Source: Zygophlyctis sp. KS116 (taxonomy: Eukaryota > Fungi > Chytridiomycota). Taken from it: DNA of 32,000 nucleotides. The position numbers and the translations under genes are program-made. The notes under the pieces were generated by a model. The model saw only the letters and a program-made list of their open reading frames with translations. It was not told the origin of the DNA and did no database searches. Of this stretch, positions 1 through 7,640 are shown one piece after another. The first letter of the stretch is position 1. Each line of letters opens with the position of its first letter. The stretch covers positions 43,955 to 75,954 of the forward strand of contig BAAFSQ010000019.1 in the NCBI GenBank assembly GCA_054661495.1, read 5' to 3'.

Positions 1-779
1 GCGTTAATGCTATTTCAAAACTTAAGAAATTTTTCTTATCTATCCATCCTTCTCTTTCGGAATAGTAAAGCGCCCATCTTGACGCAAGTCCAATAACAGT
101 ACCAAAAATTAATGATAATATTAGCTCATACGCTATAATCATGTAGCCCCATTTTGCAAATGCTTGACCAATATCATACTTATTGAGGTAAACGGAAAGT
201 GCCCACAATGGTAATACAAGCCCGTCATTAGCGGCCGATTCTGCTGCAAGTAATTGTCTAATTGAAATTGGAATGTGCATATCTGCAAATCGTCCACTAG
301 TGATAGAATTTGCAAGAATTGGATCAGTTGGGCAAGTGCATGCAGAGAGGATCAATGATTCAACAAAGGGCCTACCCAAGACCAAGTAAAAAATCAACGC
401 ACCAGCAAGCCATTTGTAAATAACAACTGGTACTAGAAGAATTGCCATACTTTTCCACCTCCTGAGCCAAAACTTTTTAGGAAGAGAAATAGCCGCAGCC
501 ATGATCTGAATACAAATTACAATATCAGAAAAAGCAAGATTGATTTTCTGCTCATCACCCAAGTCAAATGGATTCAGCGCTTTAGCCCCAATAGGCCCAA
601 AGCAAATTCCAATTAAAGTTGCCACAAGCGATTCTGATAAGAATAATCTCTCCTTTATAACAAAAGAAACAAAACCTTTCATGAGCTATCGTCATCTTAC
701 CAAAAATTAGTATAAATCCCCCAAACAATGCTGACAATACAGAGACCTCATTGGTATATGCAGACGCAAAATCTCCCAT
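1..779 (-). CDS. NHA1: Fungal Nha1/Sod2-type Na+(K+)/H+ antiporter (CPA1), 5' part; continues past the left edge of the window
   Basis: ATG at 779, 25-nt intron 676-700 (GTAAG...GCTCAT GAAAG). Spliced frame reads GGFILIFGFVSFVIKERLFLSESLVATLIGICFGP...CPTDPILANSI...LAAESAANDG, which has the CPA1 TDP and ESxxND motifs. Confidence 0.92.
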
Positions 780-1016
780 TTTAACAAAATCTCAGCCACA
801 GAAACGTTTAAAATTTTTATGTTTTTTAACTGCAATCACTGAAATTTCATAAATTCAGGAGGCACATAGGATCTGCGGGTCACAGTTGTTAACTCTCTAA
901 TCGGACCATTGGATGTGACTTGGGGATGAAGATATTCTCCAAGAAGATCTGCGCGGGGTTTAAAAGGCGTGGCTCTTTCAGCCCCTATTAGAGGTTTGTA
1001 TACGTTTGAGGTGACT
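693..1016. repeat. 324-bp direct repeat, copy 1 (Nha1 exon 1 + 56-bp spacer + last 181 bp of the SAXO5-like CDS)
   Basis: Identical by eye to 2656-2979 (offset 1963), from catcttacc to gaggtgact. Confidence 0.97.
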
Positions 1017-1135
1017 TTTTCCTTAGTCTGAATACGATCAGACTTCTCAGCTTATTTTTTTCCGGCTTTAGATGGACTAGAACCTGTATGATTTTTTAAT
1101 TTCTCAAACATTTGCTCAATGAGATATTACTGATT
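836..1135 (-). pseudogene. Truncated, internally deleted relic of the SAXO5-like gene 3' end
   Basis: 836-1016 equals 2799-2979. 1027-1044 (tctgaatacgatcagact) equals 3173-3190. About 1057-1135 aligns with mismatches to about 3534-3615. Confidence 0.8.
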
Positions 1136-1261
1136 GCTATTAGCTAAAAATGTGGTATATTATTGATAACTGTTCAACCGCTGGAATAGAATGTTGTCCG
1201 AACTCCATCACCCAAGACATAACTTCGATTAGAACCCTCTTAACACTTGTCAAATTAGCTA

Positions 1262-2398
1262 ATGCTAGGCATTGATTTCTCAGTTTTCAAGGAGTTCTTA
1301 CCTCTGCTAACTATTGGAGGAGCCACAGTTTCAGCTGCAGGTTTGATACCTCGGATCGGCCCAGGAAGAGCAATTTGGATTGGAATTCGCTCTCGTTTTG
1401 CAAGAAAGCCAGAACCTTTATCTATTCGTTCTGAAGAGATCGCTGAAATTAAGAGCATGCTTTTGAGAAAAAAATTCAATGAAACTTATTTGGTTGTTAC
1501 TGGTGAAAAGGGAGTTGGAAAGACTTGCTTGCTCAATACTGTCTTGAACAAGACTCCAGGAGTAATCAGAGTCAGTGTTTCGCCAAAGGATGATGAACAC
1601 ACAATTATCAGGAATACTCTTTTGGAATTGACTGGAATTAAATTTGATTTTGTACCTCCTTATGCCAGTGCGAAAAGACTTATATTTTGGTACCGGTTCT
1701 TTACCTTAAAGCGTTCTCCAATTGTTGTCATTAATGCAACTGAGAGAACAGCCGGGAAAGACTTTGCTAGCATAACCGGCGCTGTTCGTATACTGGTAGA
1801 AGATTACAGGCTACGTGTTGTTGTTGATGTCTCACCGAATTCTCTAGATGAATCACTTTTGTGGAAAACTAGGCCGATTGTATTTAATATCAAGCCAATG
1901 AAAAAGGAAATGATTTGTCAAATGGAACAACTGCAAGATCTGTTCAAATATATTCAAATGGCTGGTTTAGAACATACAGTTTTCGCTGTTCTTGGTGGAA
2001 TACCCTCTCGCTACAATGCACTTTGGGAGGATGTCCAAACTAAATTGGAAAATGGTGAAGATCCTAGAGAAATTATTGGAAGGTTCTTGTGTGATAAGAT
2101 ATATGCCGCAATCCAAAGTGTCAGGAAATCTAGGAGAGAGCAAAGATATGGCTGAAATAATCAAATTGTTTGACAAGGACAAAAAATTCATTCTGAGTGA
2201 TACCATAGACTTAAATAACCTAAAGCGATCTACTCCTGATAAAGTCTTTCGTGAAGTTAAACAAGATAGTTCTTCTGTTCTCATCCCAGCAACCAATGCA
2301 ATTGGAGTTGTTCTGCAGCATGGATTGTTCTGCAGCATGGTCTTACCAGTGAGCCATCTTTGGATCAGCTTGAAAAGTTACTCAAAAATAAGCAATAA
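1262..2398 (+). pseudogene. Intronless P-loop NTPase (AAA+/STAND-like, N-terminal hydrophobic segment) with two frame disruptions
   Basis: Walker A YLVVTGEKGVGKT. Frameshift near the (AG)n run 2132-2140 joins ORF 1262 to ORF 1992. A 17-nt tandem duplication at 2308-2340 shifts the tail; removing it gives ...GVVLQHGLTSEPSLDQLEKLLKNKQ* ending at 2398. Confidence 0.75.
2308..2340 (+). repeat. Tandem duplication TTGTTCTGCAGCATGG x2 (period 17)
   Basis: 2308-2323 equals 2325-2340. Confidence 0.95.
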
Positions 2399-2572
2399 AA
2401 CATGAGTTGAACTTTCAATACTTTTAAAATACGTTCGATCTTGATTTTTGAACACACTGTTAATCAACCATTAAGGAAAGACTTTAGCGTTTTCATTTAA
2501 AAATGGAATCGGTACAGACAATCTAAATTTTAAAGTAAGGGATTTATTTGGGTCGAAATAGGGATAGTATAC

Positions 2573-2584
2573 TTTCGCGCCAAA
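2573..2584. promoter_or_regulatory. E2F-type double site TTTCGCGCCAAA
   Basis: Matches TTTSSCGC on both strands (the same 12-mer as the classic DHFR E2F site). Function is not shown. Confidence 0.4.
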
Positions 2585-2655
2585 TCAAGGAGATAAATAT
2601 CTAGAACAAAATGTTTATTTCCAGCAAGAATGCATTGATTCTATTCTTTTAAAAA

Positions 2656-2979
2656 CATCTTACCAAAAATTAGTATAAATCCCCCAAACAATGCTGACAA
2701 TACAGAGACCTCATTGGTATATGCAGACGCAAAATCTCCCATTTTAACAAAATCTCAGCCACAGAAACGTTTAAAATTTTTATGTTTTTTAACTGCAATC
2801 ACTGAAATTTCATAAATTCAGGAGGCACATAGGATCTGCGGGTCACAGTTGTTAACTCTCTAATCGGACCATTGGATGTGACTTGGGGATGAAGATATTC
2901 TCCAAGAAGATCTGCGCGGGGTTTAAAAGGCGTGGCTCTTTCAGCCCCTATTAGAGGTTTGTATACGTTTGAGGTGACT
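2656..2979. repeat. 324-bp direct repeat, copy 2 (orphan Nha1 exon 1 at 2664-2742 + SAXO5-like 3' end)
   Basis: Identical to 693-1016. Similarity to Nha1 ends 8 nt into the first intron. Confidence 0.97.
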
Positions 2980-4793
2980 GTTTCAAAAGATGTTTTATCG
3001 TAAGGATAGCGAGATATAGTGTTTGCCAATGTCATCTCATAGCTATTACACGCAGATGAGGTTACTTTTGAGCATGGCCCATTGGATCCTGCAGCAATTG
3101 TATGTTGCATGCTGTGATCGGCACTTAAACTTGAGGGATCTTTAAAATGTGAATGAGTCAAAGTGACCATATTCTGAATACGATCAGACTGCTCTGGTTC
3201 GCCACCAAATGAAAAATGATGAGTTCGCAAGTACATCTTATTTTCTCTACTTTGAGACTTAGCATCCCGATCTTGTACTTTCAAAGTATATTCTTTTTTA
3301 GCAACACTATTATAATCGCACTTGATTTCAGAATCCATATTGATAGGATCAAAGAAGGGGATATCTGGTTTTCTAGTTTCTCCTCGACGGCTATAAGCCT
3401 CTTGAGCAATTGAAGAATCAATTTCATTTGGAGATCTATAATCTTTGGAAGTCACAGAAATCGTACTTTTGGATAGACCCGAATTATTAGTTCCGAATGA
3501 AATCGAGGCTGCTCCATTGAGATCTTTAACTTCTTTTCCGGCTAAGTATGGACTAGAATCCTTAACAGTTTTAGTAATATCTCCAAAATCTGCTTTATGA
3601 GAGCTAGTACCAATTTTTCTATCGGGTAAATCTTCTACAATAATGCATTGACCCTGTGCAGGGAATGCAGCAGGTGGTAATACTTTTCTTTCCAATCCTG
3701 ATTCGTGACGTTTAAATGAAGAATCATACTGAGAAGTGCCAAAGGTAAGCTCTGGGTCTCCAAGCTAACATTTCAAAATTGAATGGTCTTACAGAGAAAT
3801 GTGTTGCCTTTAAATCTTTTATAAACGAAGCACTATCTACAATAAGAGATTTATGATCTATTCTAGAATTAGCAGAAAAATCTTTTAATTTAGATTCGGA
3901 TTTGTGTACCTTGCTGATGAACGCTAGTCATGGGGACTTTTTCCATATCCGGATTGTCCAAGACCGTCGATCGGACATATTTTGATTCTTTGTGGTAGCT
4001 TTCTTCTTCAAATATGCGATCGAAAGGTTTCATGGAGCTCTTTGTTACGCTTATCCAGGGGATTCTTTCATTTCCTAAAGAAATATTGGTCTTATTTTTT
4101 GTTTGAAGAGAATCTCTTGTTGGTCGAGTTTCAAACTTTTTTTGAATCTTTAATTTAAATCCTATTTACAATACCGTTTTTGGAGTTTTTGATTCATTAT
4201 TGATTCTACTTTCAAGAGTTTCCAACGTTTCATCTCTGTAAATCGGAGGATATTTCTACTATTTAGCCAAATTAAAAATACAGAATATGATATAACACTA
4301 TGATCGGGTCTTTGAATTGGATAGCTAGGATCCATGTTATAGTCCTTTTTTGTAATACTTGTGTATGATGGTTCGGAACCTCTATCCAATGTAAAATGAG
4401 CCTTTTTTATATAATCAGCGACTAAATCATTTGACTATAAATGCATACCTTCTCTAATCTTTTCCCTTTCAGAGACTAGAGTCTTTGTCGTATATTCTGC
4501 TTTAGAGGTACTTATCCATTTCGGAGGAATTTCGTCCGGAAATCCTATTATATTGTCCCCTGGCTCATGATGATCTAAAGGCTTTGCTTATAATCAAGGA
4601 ATTTATATTTACTTTTGACAATCTTTGCAACTCTGTTTGCCCCATATAGTCGATCTCTCATAAACGCTCGATGACTGATTGAAGTATCCATTGCGGTTGT
4701 ATCAATATCTCTTTCATTTACAGAATCAACAGAATCTAGCAGCAATAGCCTCTTGCAAGCTGCCGATTTAGACGATAATGATGTTGTATTCAT
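2799..4793 (-). CDS. Ciliary microtubule-inner-protein-like repeat protein (SAXO5/TEX45-like), about 610 aa, 7 exons
   Basis: Introns 4587-4612 (26), 4422-4448 (27), 4256-4281 (26), 4148-4174 (27), 3882-3909 (28), 3765-3792 (28) give one open frame of 1833 nt. Recurring HF(S/T)(L/F)G-type and (S/T)xxxxDY/F motifs. Family assignment is by motif recognition only. Confidence 0.65.
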
Positions 4794-4940
4794 TAGGAGA
4801 TTATATGCCCAATGACGTATCCATGATCTCTTTTGGCGCGATCAAAGTATTCCTTCATCAGTCTCTAAAATATACATATAATCCCCGTCTCTACTTTTTA
4901 AGGATGCATAATGAATTAACTACTATATCTGATCGCTGGT

Positions 4941-4982
4941 CGCGAAAGTTGCACGAAAAACACGAAATAGAATAACGCGAAA
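4941..4982 (+). promoter_or_regulatory. Cluster of four SCB-like CRCGAAA motifs in a divergent promoter
   Basis: CGCGAAA at 4941, CACGAAA at 4952, CACGAAA at 4961, CGCGAAA at 4976. TTTGGCGCG at 4832-4840 lies in the same 200-bp spacer. Confidence 0.55.
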
Positions 4983-4993
4983 ATCAATTAGAA

Positions 4994-7640
4994 ATGCGTA
5001 CGATAGCTTTTCTTGTCTTTACTTCATTGGTTCTAGCAATGGATTATAAGGAAAGGTTAAGATTGAAAAGTAGGGTGCGTACCATGTTTCAACAGAGTGA
5101 TTTTTATATTTTTAATGTTTAATAGGCTTTGAGTCGTACATGGAAAATGCCTTTCCCCAAGATGAATTAGATCCAGTCAACTGCATTGGCCGATCGCGTG
5201 ATAATAATCATAATAATTGGGGAATCAATGATGTTCTAGGGAATTTCTCATTGACTCTGATAGATTCATTGGATACACTACCAATCATGGGCGATCATGT
5301 TGGATTTGAAAAGGCAGTTGATAAAGTGATCAAAACAGTTTCATTTGATAAAGATTCTAGAGTTCAGGTACTTGTTTCTATTTTTACAATTAGGTATTTG
5401 AGGTAACCATACGGGCTTTAGGTGGACTGCTTTCAGCACATTTACTGGCAAGTGATCCAACTCATGGATTTAAAATTTCTTGGTATGATGATCAGCTTTT
5501 AGTATTAGCAATTGATCTGGGGTAACATTACAATGCATTAAGAATTTTAGGAATAGGTTGATGCCGGCTTTTGAATCTAGTACCGGTATACCATATCCTA
5601 GGGTGAATCTTCGGCACGGTCTATACAATTATGAGGCTCAAGAGACATGTGCAGCAGGAGTTGGGACACTTTTATTGGAATTTTCATTATTAAGTCGTTT
5701 ATCGGGTGATCCAAAATATGAAGAGGTTGCCAAGAAGGCTTTATTTAAAATGTGGGAACTTAGGTCACCGTTAGATTTAATGGGAAACTCGTTGCAGTTT
5801 TTAGAAAACAGGTGGACTTATGGTCTTACTGGTATAGGAGCAGGTGTGGATTCGTTTTATGAATACTTGTTCAAATCATGGATTTTCTTAGGTGATCAAG
5901 AGTATCTAGATATGTTCCAAGTTTCATATAATGCCGTTATGAAACATATCAAGGACTCTTCTGGGTTTATTTATAAAAATATCGATATGAATACTGGAGA
6001 GTTAGGTGCAACTTGGATCGATTCTTTGGGAGCATTTTTCCCTGGCCTGCAGGTATTGCATGGTGATTTAAAAAATGCAATCAAACATCACGCAATGTAT
6101 TTTACTATTTGGAAAAAATACGGGGCATTGCCCGAGCGTTTTAATTGGAATACAGGGAAGTTAGATATATCTTATTACCCCCTCCGCCCAGAGCTTTTTG
6201 AATCGACATACATGCTTTATCAAGCGACAAAGGATCCTTTTTATCTCTATGCTGGAAAGATAATGCTGGAAGATTTGGAAAAAAATGCCAAAGTTAAGTG
6301 TGGTTATGCTACAATTAGTAATTTGGAATCAATGCAACATGATGGACGAATGGAAAGTTTTTTCTTATCAGAAACATTGAAATATCTATATTTGCTATTT
6401 GATTCTGGTATTTTATAAGACACCTACTCATGCTAGATAACTATTTCAACAAAATAGATTCAAACAATGTATTTACCACAGAGGCGCATTTCATATACTT
6501 GCCCAATAAGTACATTGAAAAGTCGAGCATGCATTCATCGTCGACCCTCACCTGTTCAATTTATAAGCCGAAGCCATTCAAATTAGAGGATCGTCCTCCA
6601 CTTCTCACTGACAAGGAAATAACCTTTATTGAATCGCTTGTAAATCACGCCCATAAATCCGCTAAAGGAGAAACGCCGATACCTGAACACGATATTAATT
6701 CAGAAGTTACATTTATGTATGATTTTCTTGGCAAGTTATTTTTTTTCTATGCAACATACCATGTATGTTTGATTAGTCTATATTTTGTACTTGTTTTCGG
6801 GTATAATACTTTAGGTTTCCTGGAGATCACAAAAAAATACAAGTTATCAAATTAGATGAATCTTCATTATTTTATAGCAGTATCAATGGCTCTAGAATAC
6901 AGATAAAGCTTGATAAAAGCGCGGATAAAACGTATATGGAGTATTATGTGAGCGAAATCGACAATACACCTATTGGTAATATGATTCAAGTCATAGTACC
7001 TGATAGGGCTCTATGGTTTTTGCAAAATCGTTTCCGATCTGATATCGGATCATTACGTTTGTCGAATGGACACACTGTACAAGCACAAATGGCTAATTTT
7101 GGGATAGCCTTGTCATTTTACGAGAATCTAGAATCAGAAATAGAATACGTTTCAGCATCTAAAATAATATCAAGTGTTGTAGACATTGGTTTTGGATGCG
7201 AATATTTAGATCCTTTAAAGTATTTTGGTAAATTTATAGTTGTAAAAAGGGGGAAATGTACTTTTCCCACAAAAGCATTTTGGGCTCAAGAAGCCGGCGC
7301 AAAAGCATTACTAGTTATATCTGATGATGAAACTTTGATTAGTATGGAGCAATCATCAAAGCAATGGGATTATAATTTAGAAAATGGGGTTGATATGACT
7401 TGGATCCCTTGTTTCTTTTTGACCAAATCAGCCTCTGCTTCACTCTTTGAACATTCAGATTCAAAAGTAGTACTTAATGGACCTCCAGAAATAAGCAATC
7501 TTTTCTATTCAAAAATCAAGGTCTCTAATCTACTTATTAAAGTCAAAAGAACAAATGGTAACATTCTTAAAAAAGGATACTTATATCCTGGACAATCATT
7601 TAGATGCATGAAAAAATGTATGGCCTATATATGCTGTTAA
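4994..7640 (+). CDS. GH47 alpha-1,2-mannosidase with C-terminal PA domain (Mnl1/Htm1/EDEM3-like), about 820 aa
   Basis: Signal peptide [15 protein letters not shown]. Motifs [64 protein letters not shown]; PA motif [15 protein letters not shown]. Introns 5097-5125, 5368-5393, 5522-5550, 6408-6436. The 6731-6814 junction is uncertain. Confidence 0.9.

Follow-up and report, generated by a model that had tools for sequence, protein, structure and literature searches.

An ATPase gene between identical 324-base repeats in a compact chytrid genome, probably at the junction of an old tandem duplication

Gene order and the repeat pair

The window, a stretch of 32,000 nucleotides from the chytrid Zygophlyctis sp. 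KS116, opens with the 5' part of a Na+/H+ exchanger gene of the Nha1-like type on the minus strand (1–779), composed of exon 1 at 701–779, a 25-base intron at 676–700 and an exon 2 that extends past the left end of the window. In the profile searches, for which exons were searched singly, the exon-2 frame matched the Pfam family Na_H_Exchanger (PF00999) with E = 7e-29 and 101.3 bits against a cut-off of 26.2, and the join of the two exons is colinear with the Cladochytrium orthologue P0131. The gene below the exchanger is zf-UBP/DUSP, according to its Pfam matches. To the right, also on the minus strand, lies the intact last exon of a SAXO5-like gene (2799–3695), an open frame of 298 residues with more exons upstream, to about position 4400 or beyond. 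Orthologues of this gene were found at 55–98% identity; its nearest protein-atlas cluster was "stabilizer of axonemal microtubules 5" (score 0.94, 191 shared features), which serves as a lead only, and the frame had no match in Pfam at E ≤ 1, the family profile PF15373 included. The genome is gene-dense, with spacers of 27–56 bases, and no RNA genes were found within positions 1–6000.

Positions 693–1016 and 2656–2979 are identical at 324 of 324 bases, as the earlier note on this DNA had read from the window, and a search of the whole 12.7-Mb assembly returned only these two copies. The DNA between them comprises 1,639 bases and has one copy in the assembly. The match stops abruptly at its left edge, while its right edge consists of one mismatch followed by four chance matches. 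Read on the minus strand, the repeat contains the last 181 bases of the SAXO5-like frame including the stop (2799 in the right copy, 836 in the left), the 56-base spacer, and then the exchanger ATG (2742 and 779, respectively) with exon 1, and it ends in GTAAGATG, the first 8 bases of exchanger intron 1. Collapsing the two copies restores a SAXO-to-exchanger tandem with the 56-base spacer, the duplication is host-derived and both neighbouring genes are left whole, all of which agrees with the earlier note. The left copy (693–1016) serves the working exchanger with exon 1 and 237 bases upstream of the ATG. The right copy (2656–2979) serves the working SAXO5-like gene with its last 181 coding bases and 143 bases downstream of the stop, and the C-terminus it encodes is conserved in six SAXO5-like orthologues.

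The foreign core and its ATPase gene

The core of the insert (1149–2499, plus strand) has no significant alignment to the SAXO and exchanger regions and contains an ATPase gene with about 110 bases upstream and 100 bases downstream. This gene (1262–2398, plus strand) encodes a P-loop ATPase of the STAND/AAA+ type, is full length and is broken into three frame pieces: tblastn with the intact 373-residue relative P0001 recovered residues 1–293, 293–356 and 346–372 in three frames at 89–97% identity. The breaks correspond to a frame change near 2136–2140 and a 17-base near-tandem duplication at 2310–2343, so that the pseudogene reading given previously stands as far as the assembly is correct. 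There are two frame breaks only, and the gene is 94% identical to the intact relative; as judged from its sequence, it probably worked until recently and is now decaying.

The window frame matched the Pfam families AAA_22, ATPase_2 and NB-ARC, the AAA_22 score being 27.3 bits for the window frame and 28.8 for P0001 at a cut-off of 27, which is a small margin. Among 42 family members, the Walker A loop shows no variation at G81, G84 and G86 and hardly any at K87. The AlphaFold model (pLDDT 82.7) consists of an ATPase core followed by a helical/winged-helix tail, and its Foldseek matches were 2qen, 2fna, ORC1 (ORC/Cdc6) and CED-4, with E-values from 1.7e-7 to 1e-6. The protein shares the Walker A loop, the ATPase core and the helical plus winged-helix-like tail with the STAND and ORC/Cdc6-like AAA+ ATPases (AAA_22, ATPase_2; 2qen, 2fna, CED-4, Apaf-1). 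It differs from them in its short length (about 372 residues), the lack of sensor repeats and an N-terminal hydrophobic stretch, and it belongs to a separate family present in chytrids and aphelids. The relatives are intronless, as seen from contiguous DNA alignments. The gene is single-copy, with no paralogue in this genome, and the search in IMG/VR returned no relative, by which a viral origin was rejected. In a metagenome scan, the family appeared on nine contigs, all short and offering no flanking repeats for comparison; the contig of the closest relative was not among them. One metagenomic homologue of the ATPase has a Crinkler-N-like frame next to it.

The earlier note had taken the 324 bases for a very large target-site-like duplication, and the locus for a possible mobilisation route of NTPase/CRN families. 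A recent one-step insertion of a mobile ATPase cassette, duplicating exactly 324 target bases and belonging to such a general NTPase/Crinkler route, would agree with the perfection of the repeat, with the intactness of both neighbours and with a near strain that may hold the empty site (see below). We nevertheless consider it very improbable, since the insert has neither inverted repeats nor a transposase, its ends match nothing else in the genome, and the cargo is single-copy, has no paralogue and carries no Crinkler domain. More specifically, no inverted repeats pairing the ends of the insert were found, nor any transposase or reverse transcriptase frame, the ATPase being the only long frame; on these points the earlier note was right. 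When the insert and each of its non-coding ends were compared with the genome (E ≤ 10, and short words in a 237-kb sample), only chance 12–14-mers appeared, and a transposon with a shared "tip" was discarded, since the insert's ends have no other match in the genome. A retrocopy or LINE-mediated insertion was likewise discarded: the right end of the insert has only five A's, which align to the native exchanger 3' region, and the relatives are intronless anyway. Target-site duplications of transposons are usually 2–15 bases long and only rarely reach hundreds of bases in LINE-mediated insertions. They resemble this locus in that an insert is flanked by direct repeats of host DNA. In contrast, the duplication here has 324 bases intact, would originally have covered at least 2.7 kb, and comes without element ends, enzyme gene, other copies or poly(A). 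Nothing on point was found in the literature about long target duplications in chytrids.

The Crinkler (CRN) effector genes of oomycetes and chytrids are, like this gene, accessory P-loop genes of zoosporic organisms; however, neither the window frame nor the intact P0001 matched the Crinkler N-terminal domain (PF20147) at E ≤ 0.1. A Crinkler-type gene does occur within a repeat pair elsewhere in the genome (G000:C1), where a 149-base repeat surrounds it in a layout similar to that of the ATPase locus and no remnants lie beside the repeat. This second locus speaks for a one-step route. The ATPase has no similarity to the C-terminal 481 residues of that Crinkler-type gene. Most paralogues of the latter are on short contigs breaking inside the gene, and for the one on a long contig (C40), no flanking repeat of at least 20 bases occurs within 1.5 kb. 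Asking whether NTPase paralogues are also flanked by direct repeats, as the earlier note had proposed, led nowhere, the ATPase having no paralogue in the genome. At this locus, the idea of a mobilisation route for NTPase/CRN families is not supported, given the single-copy cargo and the missing paralogues, shared ends and Crinkler domain.

Decayed remnants and the history of the locus

Both ends of the insert turned out to be decayed copies of the host locus, which the earlier note had overlooked. On the left, a decayed remnant of the SAXO5-like last exon (1021–1148, minus strand) continues from the SAXO part of the left repeat and is colinear with 3167–3630, with several deletions and an in-frame stop. 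It is identical to the SAXO gene at 101 of 128 aligned bases (79%, Jukes-Cantor distance 0.25), with an alignment score of 43.5 against a null of 26.6 ± 2.4 (z = 7.1). On the right, a decayed remnant of the exchanger 3' end (2500–2655) spans the final 39 coding bases, the spacer that follows and the first part of the zf-UBP/DUSP gene. Its source, G000:C19:42930–43140, precedes the window by 1023 to 815 bases, and the remnant is identical to it at 86 of 103 aligned bases (84%, Jukes-Cantor distance 0.19), including a 17/17 exact word, with a score of 53.5 against 26.8 ± 3.3 (z = 8.1). For both scores, the null was drawn from 250 to 1,330 control windows taken in this genome, where similarity of this kind was not common, and the identity figures are optimistic because the alignments are short and gapped. 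The right remnant abuts the right repeat, the exchanger copy on this side lacking about 1.5 kb of its body. Such leftovers of the same locus, at about 80% identity, are impossible for a recent clean insertion.

The order and orientation of the remnants are those predicted for a tandem-duplication junction, SAXO on the left representing the unit's end and the exchanger 3' flank on the right its start, and their similar divergence (79 and 84%) would fit a single event. On each side, the repeat stops exactly where the first deletion starts. Beside the SAXO remnant, at the right side of the repeat block, a deletion scar lies between two GTGAC words. The edges of the block can accordingly be described as deletion scars, apparent in the bases themselves on the right and deduced from the alignment on the left. 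This is where a single staggered cut fails as an explanation: the 324 bases would lie within an older duplication of at least 2.7 kb, the rest of which is only about 80% identical. The peptide of the SAXO remnant has EK and SKAGK as in distant orthologues, in place of EQ and YLAGK in the SAXO of this genome, a weak hint that the copy may be older than the recent SAXO changes. RIP-like mutation was rejected as a source of the divergence, all five mismatches in the first block (1021–1053) being transversions.

The locus probably represents an old and by now worn-down tandem duplication whose junction carries a foreign gene. The duplication would have covered at least 2.7 kb, beginning at the start of the zf-UBP/DUSP gene and including the entire exchanger, the 56-base spacer and the last ~830 bases of the SAXO5-like gene. 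Where the two copies meet, there is about 1.35 kb of foreign DNA with the small STAND-type ATPase gene. The foreign DNA may have come in the same event or landed later in redundant DNA. After that, the exchanger would have survived in the left copy, where very little of the SAXO fragment is left, and SAXO in the right copy, where 1.5 kb of the exchanger is gone. Only the 324 bases used by both surviving genes would stay in both copies, namely exchanger exon 1 with its upstream region and the SAXO C-terminus with its downstream region. We infer that repeated gene conversion between the copies keeps these bases identical, because a perfect 324-base block stands beside remnants of about 80% identity. 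Zero differences in 324 bases next to about 20% divergence is extreme and counts against this reading; an assembler reusing one repeat node could mask a few real differences. Tandem segmental duplications with reciprocal loss have the same appearance: two direct copies of a contiguous host stretch, a different gene lost in each, and colinear remnants. Unlike a plain case of this kind, the present locus has foreign DNA with its own gene at the junction and a 324-base core that stays identical, the latter because the end of one gene and the start and upstream region of the next overlap in function in this compact genome.

An assembly artefact would mean that the true chromosome has the simple SAXO-to-exchanger tandem and that the insert is an extrachromosomal circle, or mis-threaded DNA, looped through the repeat node. 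The assembly is fragmented (1,175 contigs for 12.7 Mb), the assembly graph of an exact repeat around unique DNA does not differ from that of an empty site and a circle, and a reused node yields perfect identity. Even so, we regard this as quite unlikely: the insert bears diverged copies of both sides of the same locus and so arose here, no other repeat flank is present in the assembly, and a circle with no integrated form would be lost over time. Since the assembly has no third context for the repeat, there is no other place for the insert.

A near strain, with SAXO and exchanger proteins 98 and 99% identical to those described here, apparently has both genes on one contig of 39,407 bases. SAXO and exchanger orthologues have two contig sizes in common (39,407 and 5,148 bases), and no ATPase match came from contigs of those sizes; the near strain seems to hold both neighbours without the ATPase. 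A SAXO orthologue and an ATPase homologue, both on contigs of 9,684 bases, were left unused, since they come from different sources and the match in size could be chance. If the near-strain site is empty, the duplication, being old, must later have been lost in that strain through recombination of one repeat with the other, and such a reversal fits the hint of a cassette-free strain.

A Campbell-type integration would reconcile the old remnants with a possibly empty near strain in another way. Here, a circle of 1,963 bases (repeat plus insert), derived from an old filled locus of another lineage, would have integrated again into an empty allele through homologous recombination in the repeat, the cassette then acting as a reversible and transmissible unit, and the diverged remnants would be its old baggage. 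Single-crossover integration does give direct repeats of host DNA around an insert, and in the laboratory a chytrid, Batrachochytrium, integrates whole circular plasmids through homology (PMC12595416). In such ends-in integrants, as in those of yeast integrative plasmids, the region of homology is duplicated around the insert and the event is reversed by recombination between the copies. By comparison, the present locus is natural, shows no vector or circle, and has a duplicated region that has decayed except for its core. We think this course of events unlikely, since neither a circle nor a second locus was seen, identity of the repeat copies would demand that donor and recipient did not differ in this region, the older filled locus of the tandem-duplication reading would still be needed, and plain inheritance with loss in the near strain accounts for the same data.

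Implications for a gene-dense genome

The locus is a real and tidy rearrangement, and there is no evidence here for a new gene-moving route. The 324-base block as putative exchanger promoter and SAXO terminator fits what outlived the decay. The exchanger promoter is expected at most 237 bases upstream of the ATG, inside the coding sequence of its neighbour, and the 3' end signals of SAXO within 143 bases after the stop. The locus also calls for caution with other repeat-flanked cassettes of this genome: what looks like a perfect long "target duplication" can be the part of a larger, older duplication that has been homogenised, and its length and identity are then not necessarily a guide to how or when the insertion took place.

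Tentatively, and with more doubt than confidence, one may also suppose that the chytrid has a recurrent, gene-sparing way of adding accessory genes one at a time, in which cargo arrives with a landing-site duplication of hundreds to thousands of bases and recombination between the repeats later removes it cleanly, this locus being an old, worn example. Homology-driven integration of gene-bearing circles and replication template switching are candidate mechanisms. If true, this would give a genome that has hardly any free spacer a system of reversible cassettes. Overall, the locus illustrates how a gene-dense genome can gain a gene while its neighbours stay intact, first by duplicating the landing site and then by losing through decay all that is not needed by both neighbours.

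The repeat and the two genes that share it

The source assembly of this zoosporic fungus comprises 12.7 Mb in 1,175 contigs, and the contig carrying the locus, C19, has 75,954 bases. As the earlier note had claimed, 693-1016 equals 2656-2979: the two stretches are identical at all 324 positions, and a genome-wide search of the assembly recovered only these two copies, both here. The 1,639 bases that separate the copies are single-copy in the genome. In minus-strand order, the repeat opens with the final 181 bases of an open frame of 298 residues (stop included), followed by a 56-base spacer, an ATG with 79 coding bases and, lastly, GTAAGATG, the start of intron 1 of the next gene.

This downstream gene, searched exon by exon with each exon as a separate query, encodes a Na+/H+ exchanger: exon 2 matches Pfam PF00999 at E=7e-29. 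Intron 1, between exons 1 and 2, is apparently just 25 bases long (676-700, minus strand; GTAAGA...AG), and splicing it out gives a junction colinear with the Cladochytrium orthologue P0131. The orthologues of the upstream frame are 55-98% identical to it, with a conserved C-terminus. Its nearest protein-atlas cluster, 'stabilizer of axonemal microtubules 5', makes the previously proposed name SAXO5-like plausible, albeit unproven; the Pfam search of the frame gave no match. The repeat corresponds to the stretch that both surviving genes have retained in common: exon 1 and 237 bases upstream of the ATG for the exchanger, and the last 181 coding bases with 143 bases downstream for the SAXO5-like gene.

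Diverged host sequence at both ends of the insert

Immediately beyond the left repeat, on its right side, 1021-1148 can be aligned to 3167-3630 of the intact SAXO5-like exon (101 of 128 bases identical, with large gaps), the score being 43.5 against 26.6 +/- 2.4 in 248 control windows. This remnant, which has an in-frame stop, continues the SAXO5-like reading frame from the left repeat. At the other end of the insert, adjoining the right repeat on its left, 2500-2655 matches C19:42930-43140 (86 of 103 bases identical, including a 17/17 word; score 53.5 against 26.8 +/- 3.3 in 1,330 controls), a segment that comprises the last 39 coding bases of the exchanger, the adjoining spacer downstream and the beginning of a zf-UBP/DUSP gene. 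The core, 1149-2499, resembled no part of the locus. An empty site accompanied by a 1,963-base circle is a possible alternative that would give the same assembly graph as an integrated insert, but the insert holds diverged copies of both sides of the locus, and a genome-wide search found no third flank for the repeat in the assembly. Since it carries these copies, the insert appears to have arisen at this locus.

The order within the insert (SAXO5-like remnant, foreign core, exchanger 3' remnant) is that of a tandem duplication junction, where the unit end is followed by the unit start. The duplicated unit measures at least 2,694 bases, namely 2,041 from C19:42930 to the repeat end plus 653 of the SAXO5-like gene. 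Missing from the right copy are 1,507 exchanger bases, a deletion that begins 8 bases into intron 1 and ends 39 bases ahead of the stop; the left copy lacks most of its SAXO5-like fragment, the first deletion beginning at the repeat edge, between two GTGAC words. Because deletions in both copies abut the repeat, its edges are most simply taken as deletion scars rather than a staggered cut, which leaves a giant target-site duplication by a new mobilisation route unsupported at this locus.

The Jukes-Cantor distances of the two remnants are similar (0.25 and 0.19), which fits an origin of both in one old event. The remnant peptide also retains EK and SKAGK as in distant orthologues, both changed in this genome's SAXO5-like protein, although this is weak evidence. 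Such divergence rules out time or selection alone as the cause of 324 unchanged bases. The repeat copies have probably been homogenised by repeated gene conversion, limited by the flanking deletions. A few real differences between the copies could be hidden by the assembler reusing one repeat node.

The ATPase gene in the insert

The frame at 1262-2155 has a Walker A loop and weak Pfam matches to AAA_22, ATPase_2 and NB-ARC. Its family consists of proteins of about 372 residues in Batrachochytrium, Phlyctochytrium, Amoeboaphelidium and many environmental contigs. In structure comparison, the family's AlphaFold model (pLDDT 82.7) resembles archaeal Walker ATPases, ORC/Cdc6 and CED-4/Apaf-1, and the cargo is thus predicted to be a small STAND/AAA+ ATPase. 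Several results set the gene apart from Crinkler genes and mobile families: it has no Crinkler N-terminal domain, it does not resemble the 481 C-terminal residues encoded by a Crinkler-type gene in the same genome, and searches found neither paralogues in this genome nor viral relatives.

The closest relative, P0001, is intact, has 373 residues and is 94% identical to the window gene, which matches it over the full length but in three frame pieces, broken by a frame change near 2136-2140 and a 17-base near-tandem duplication at 2310-2343. With only two breaks and such identity to an intact relative, the gene was probably functional until recently. In two metagenome contigs, homologues adjoin a Crinkler-N-like frame (L010:2454-2762, E=0.002) and a chromodomain frame (L013:1-624, E=2e-4), which suggests that in other zoosporic fungi the family resides amid accessory and mobile DNA.

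Other loci, relatives and the origin of the locus

A 237-kb genome sample contained two cases of unique DNA enclosed by direct repeats that were exact or nearly so, one being this locus. In the other, C1:48458-48606 equals 51140-51288 (149 bases, one mismatch), enclosing a minus-strand gene of 2.5 kb that carries a P-loop motif and has a pseudouridine synthase gene and eIF3c as its neighbours; its Crinkler N-terminal match is weak (E=0.002, below Pfam's cut-off), and its stop codon falls some 50 bases within the left repeat. Beside these 149-base repeats no decayed remnants were found. A genome search found no 'tip', an end sequence shared with other loci, at the ATPase cassette. Paralogues of the Crinkler-type C1 gene (C849, C776, C1085, C769, C1135) are 46-75% identical, and most lie on 1-2 kb contigs breaking inside the gene, so the assembly represents this family poorly. 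Elsewhere on C1, a 76-base inverted repeat pair (54550-54625 and 55272-55347, 98.7% identical, enclosing about 650 bases) is a candidate small inverted-repeat element. At C2:56110-58030, two paralogous genes in tandem, probably encoding secreted proteins, share a 5' block of 66 identical bases inside a duplicated region of 79-94% identity and look like an ordinary young tandem gene duplication.

In a near strain, the SAXO5-like (P0121) and exchanger (P0127) proteins, 98% and 99% identical, appear to be encoded together on a 39,407-base ENA contig; in a more distant relative, their counterparts P0124 and P0129 appear to share a 5,148-base contig. No ATPase match came from contigs of either length. 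These data hint at empty sites in the two relatives. If the near-strain site is empty, repeat-repeat recombination would have removed the insert there, or the site would be polymorphic.

Overall, the most likely reading of the locus is an old tandem duplication holding a captured gene, in which the two copies would have decayed reciprocally around a homogenised core. The ATPase gene may have come with the duplication or landed afterwards in redundant DNA. Such an event is of a known kind, found here in an unusually clean and instructive form.
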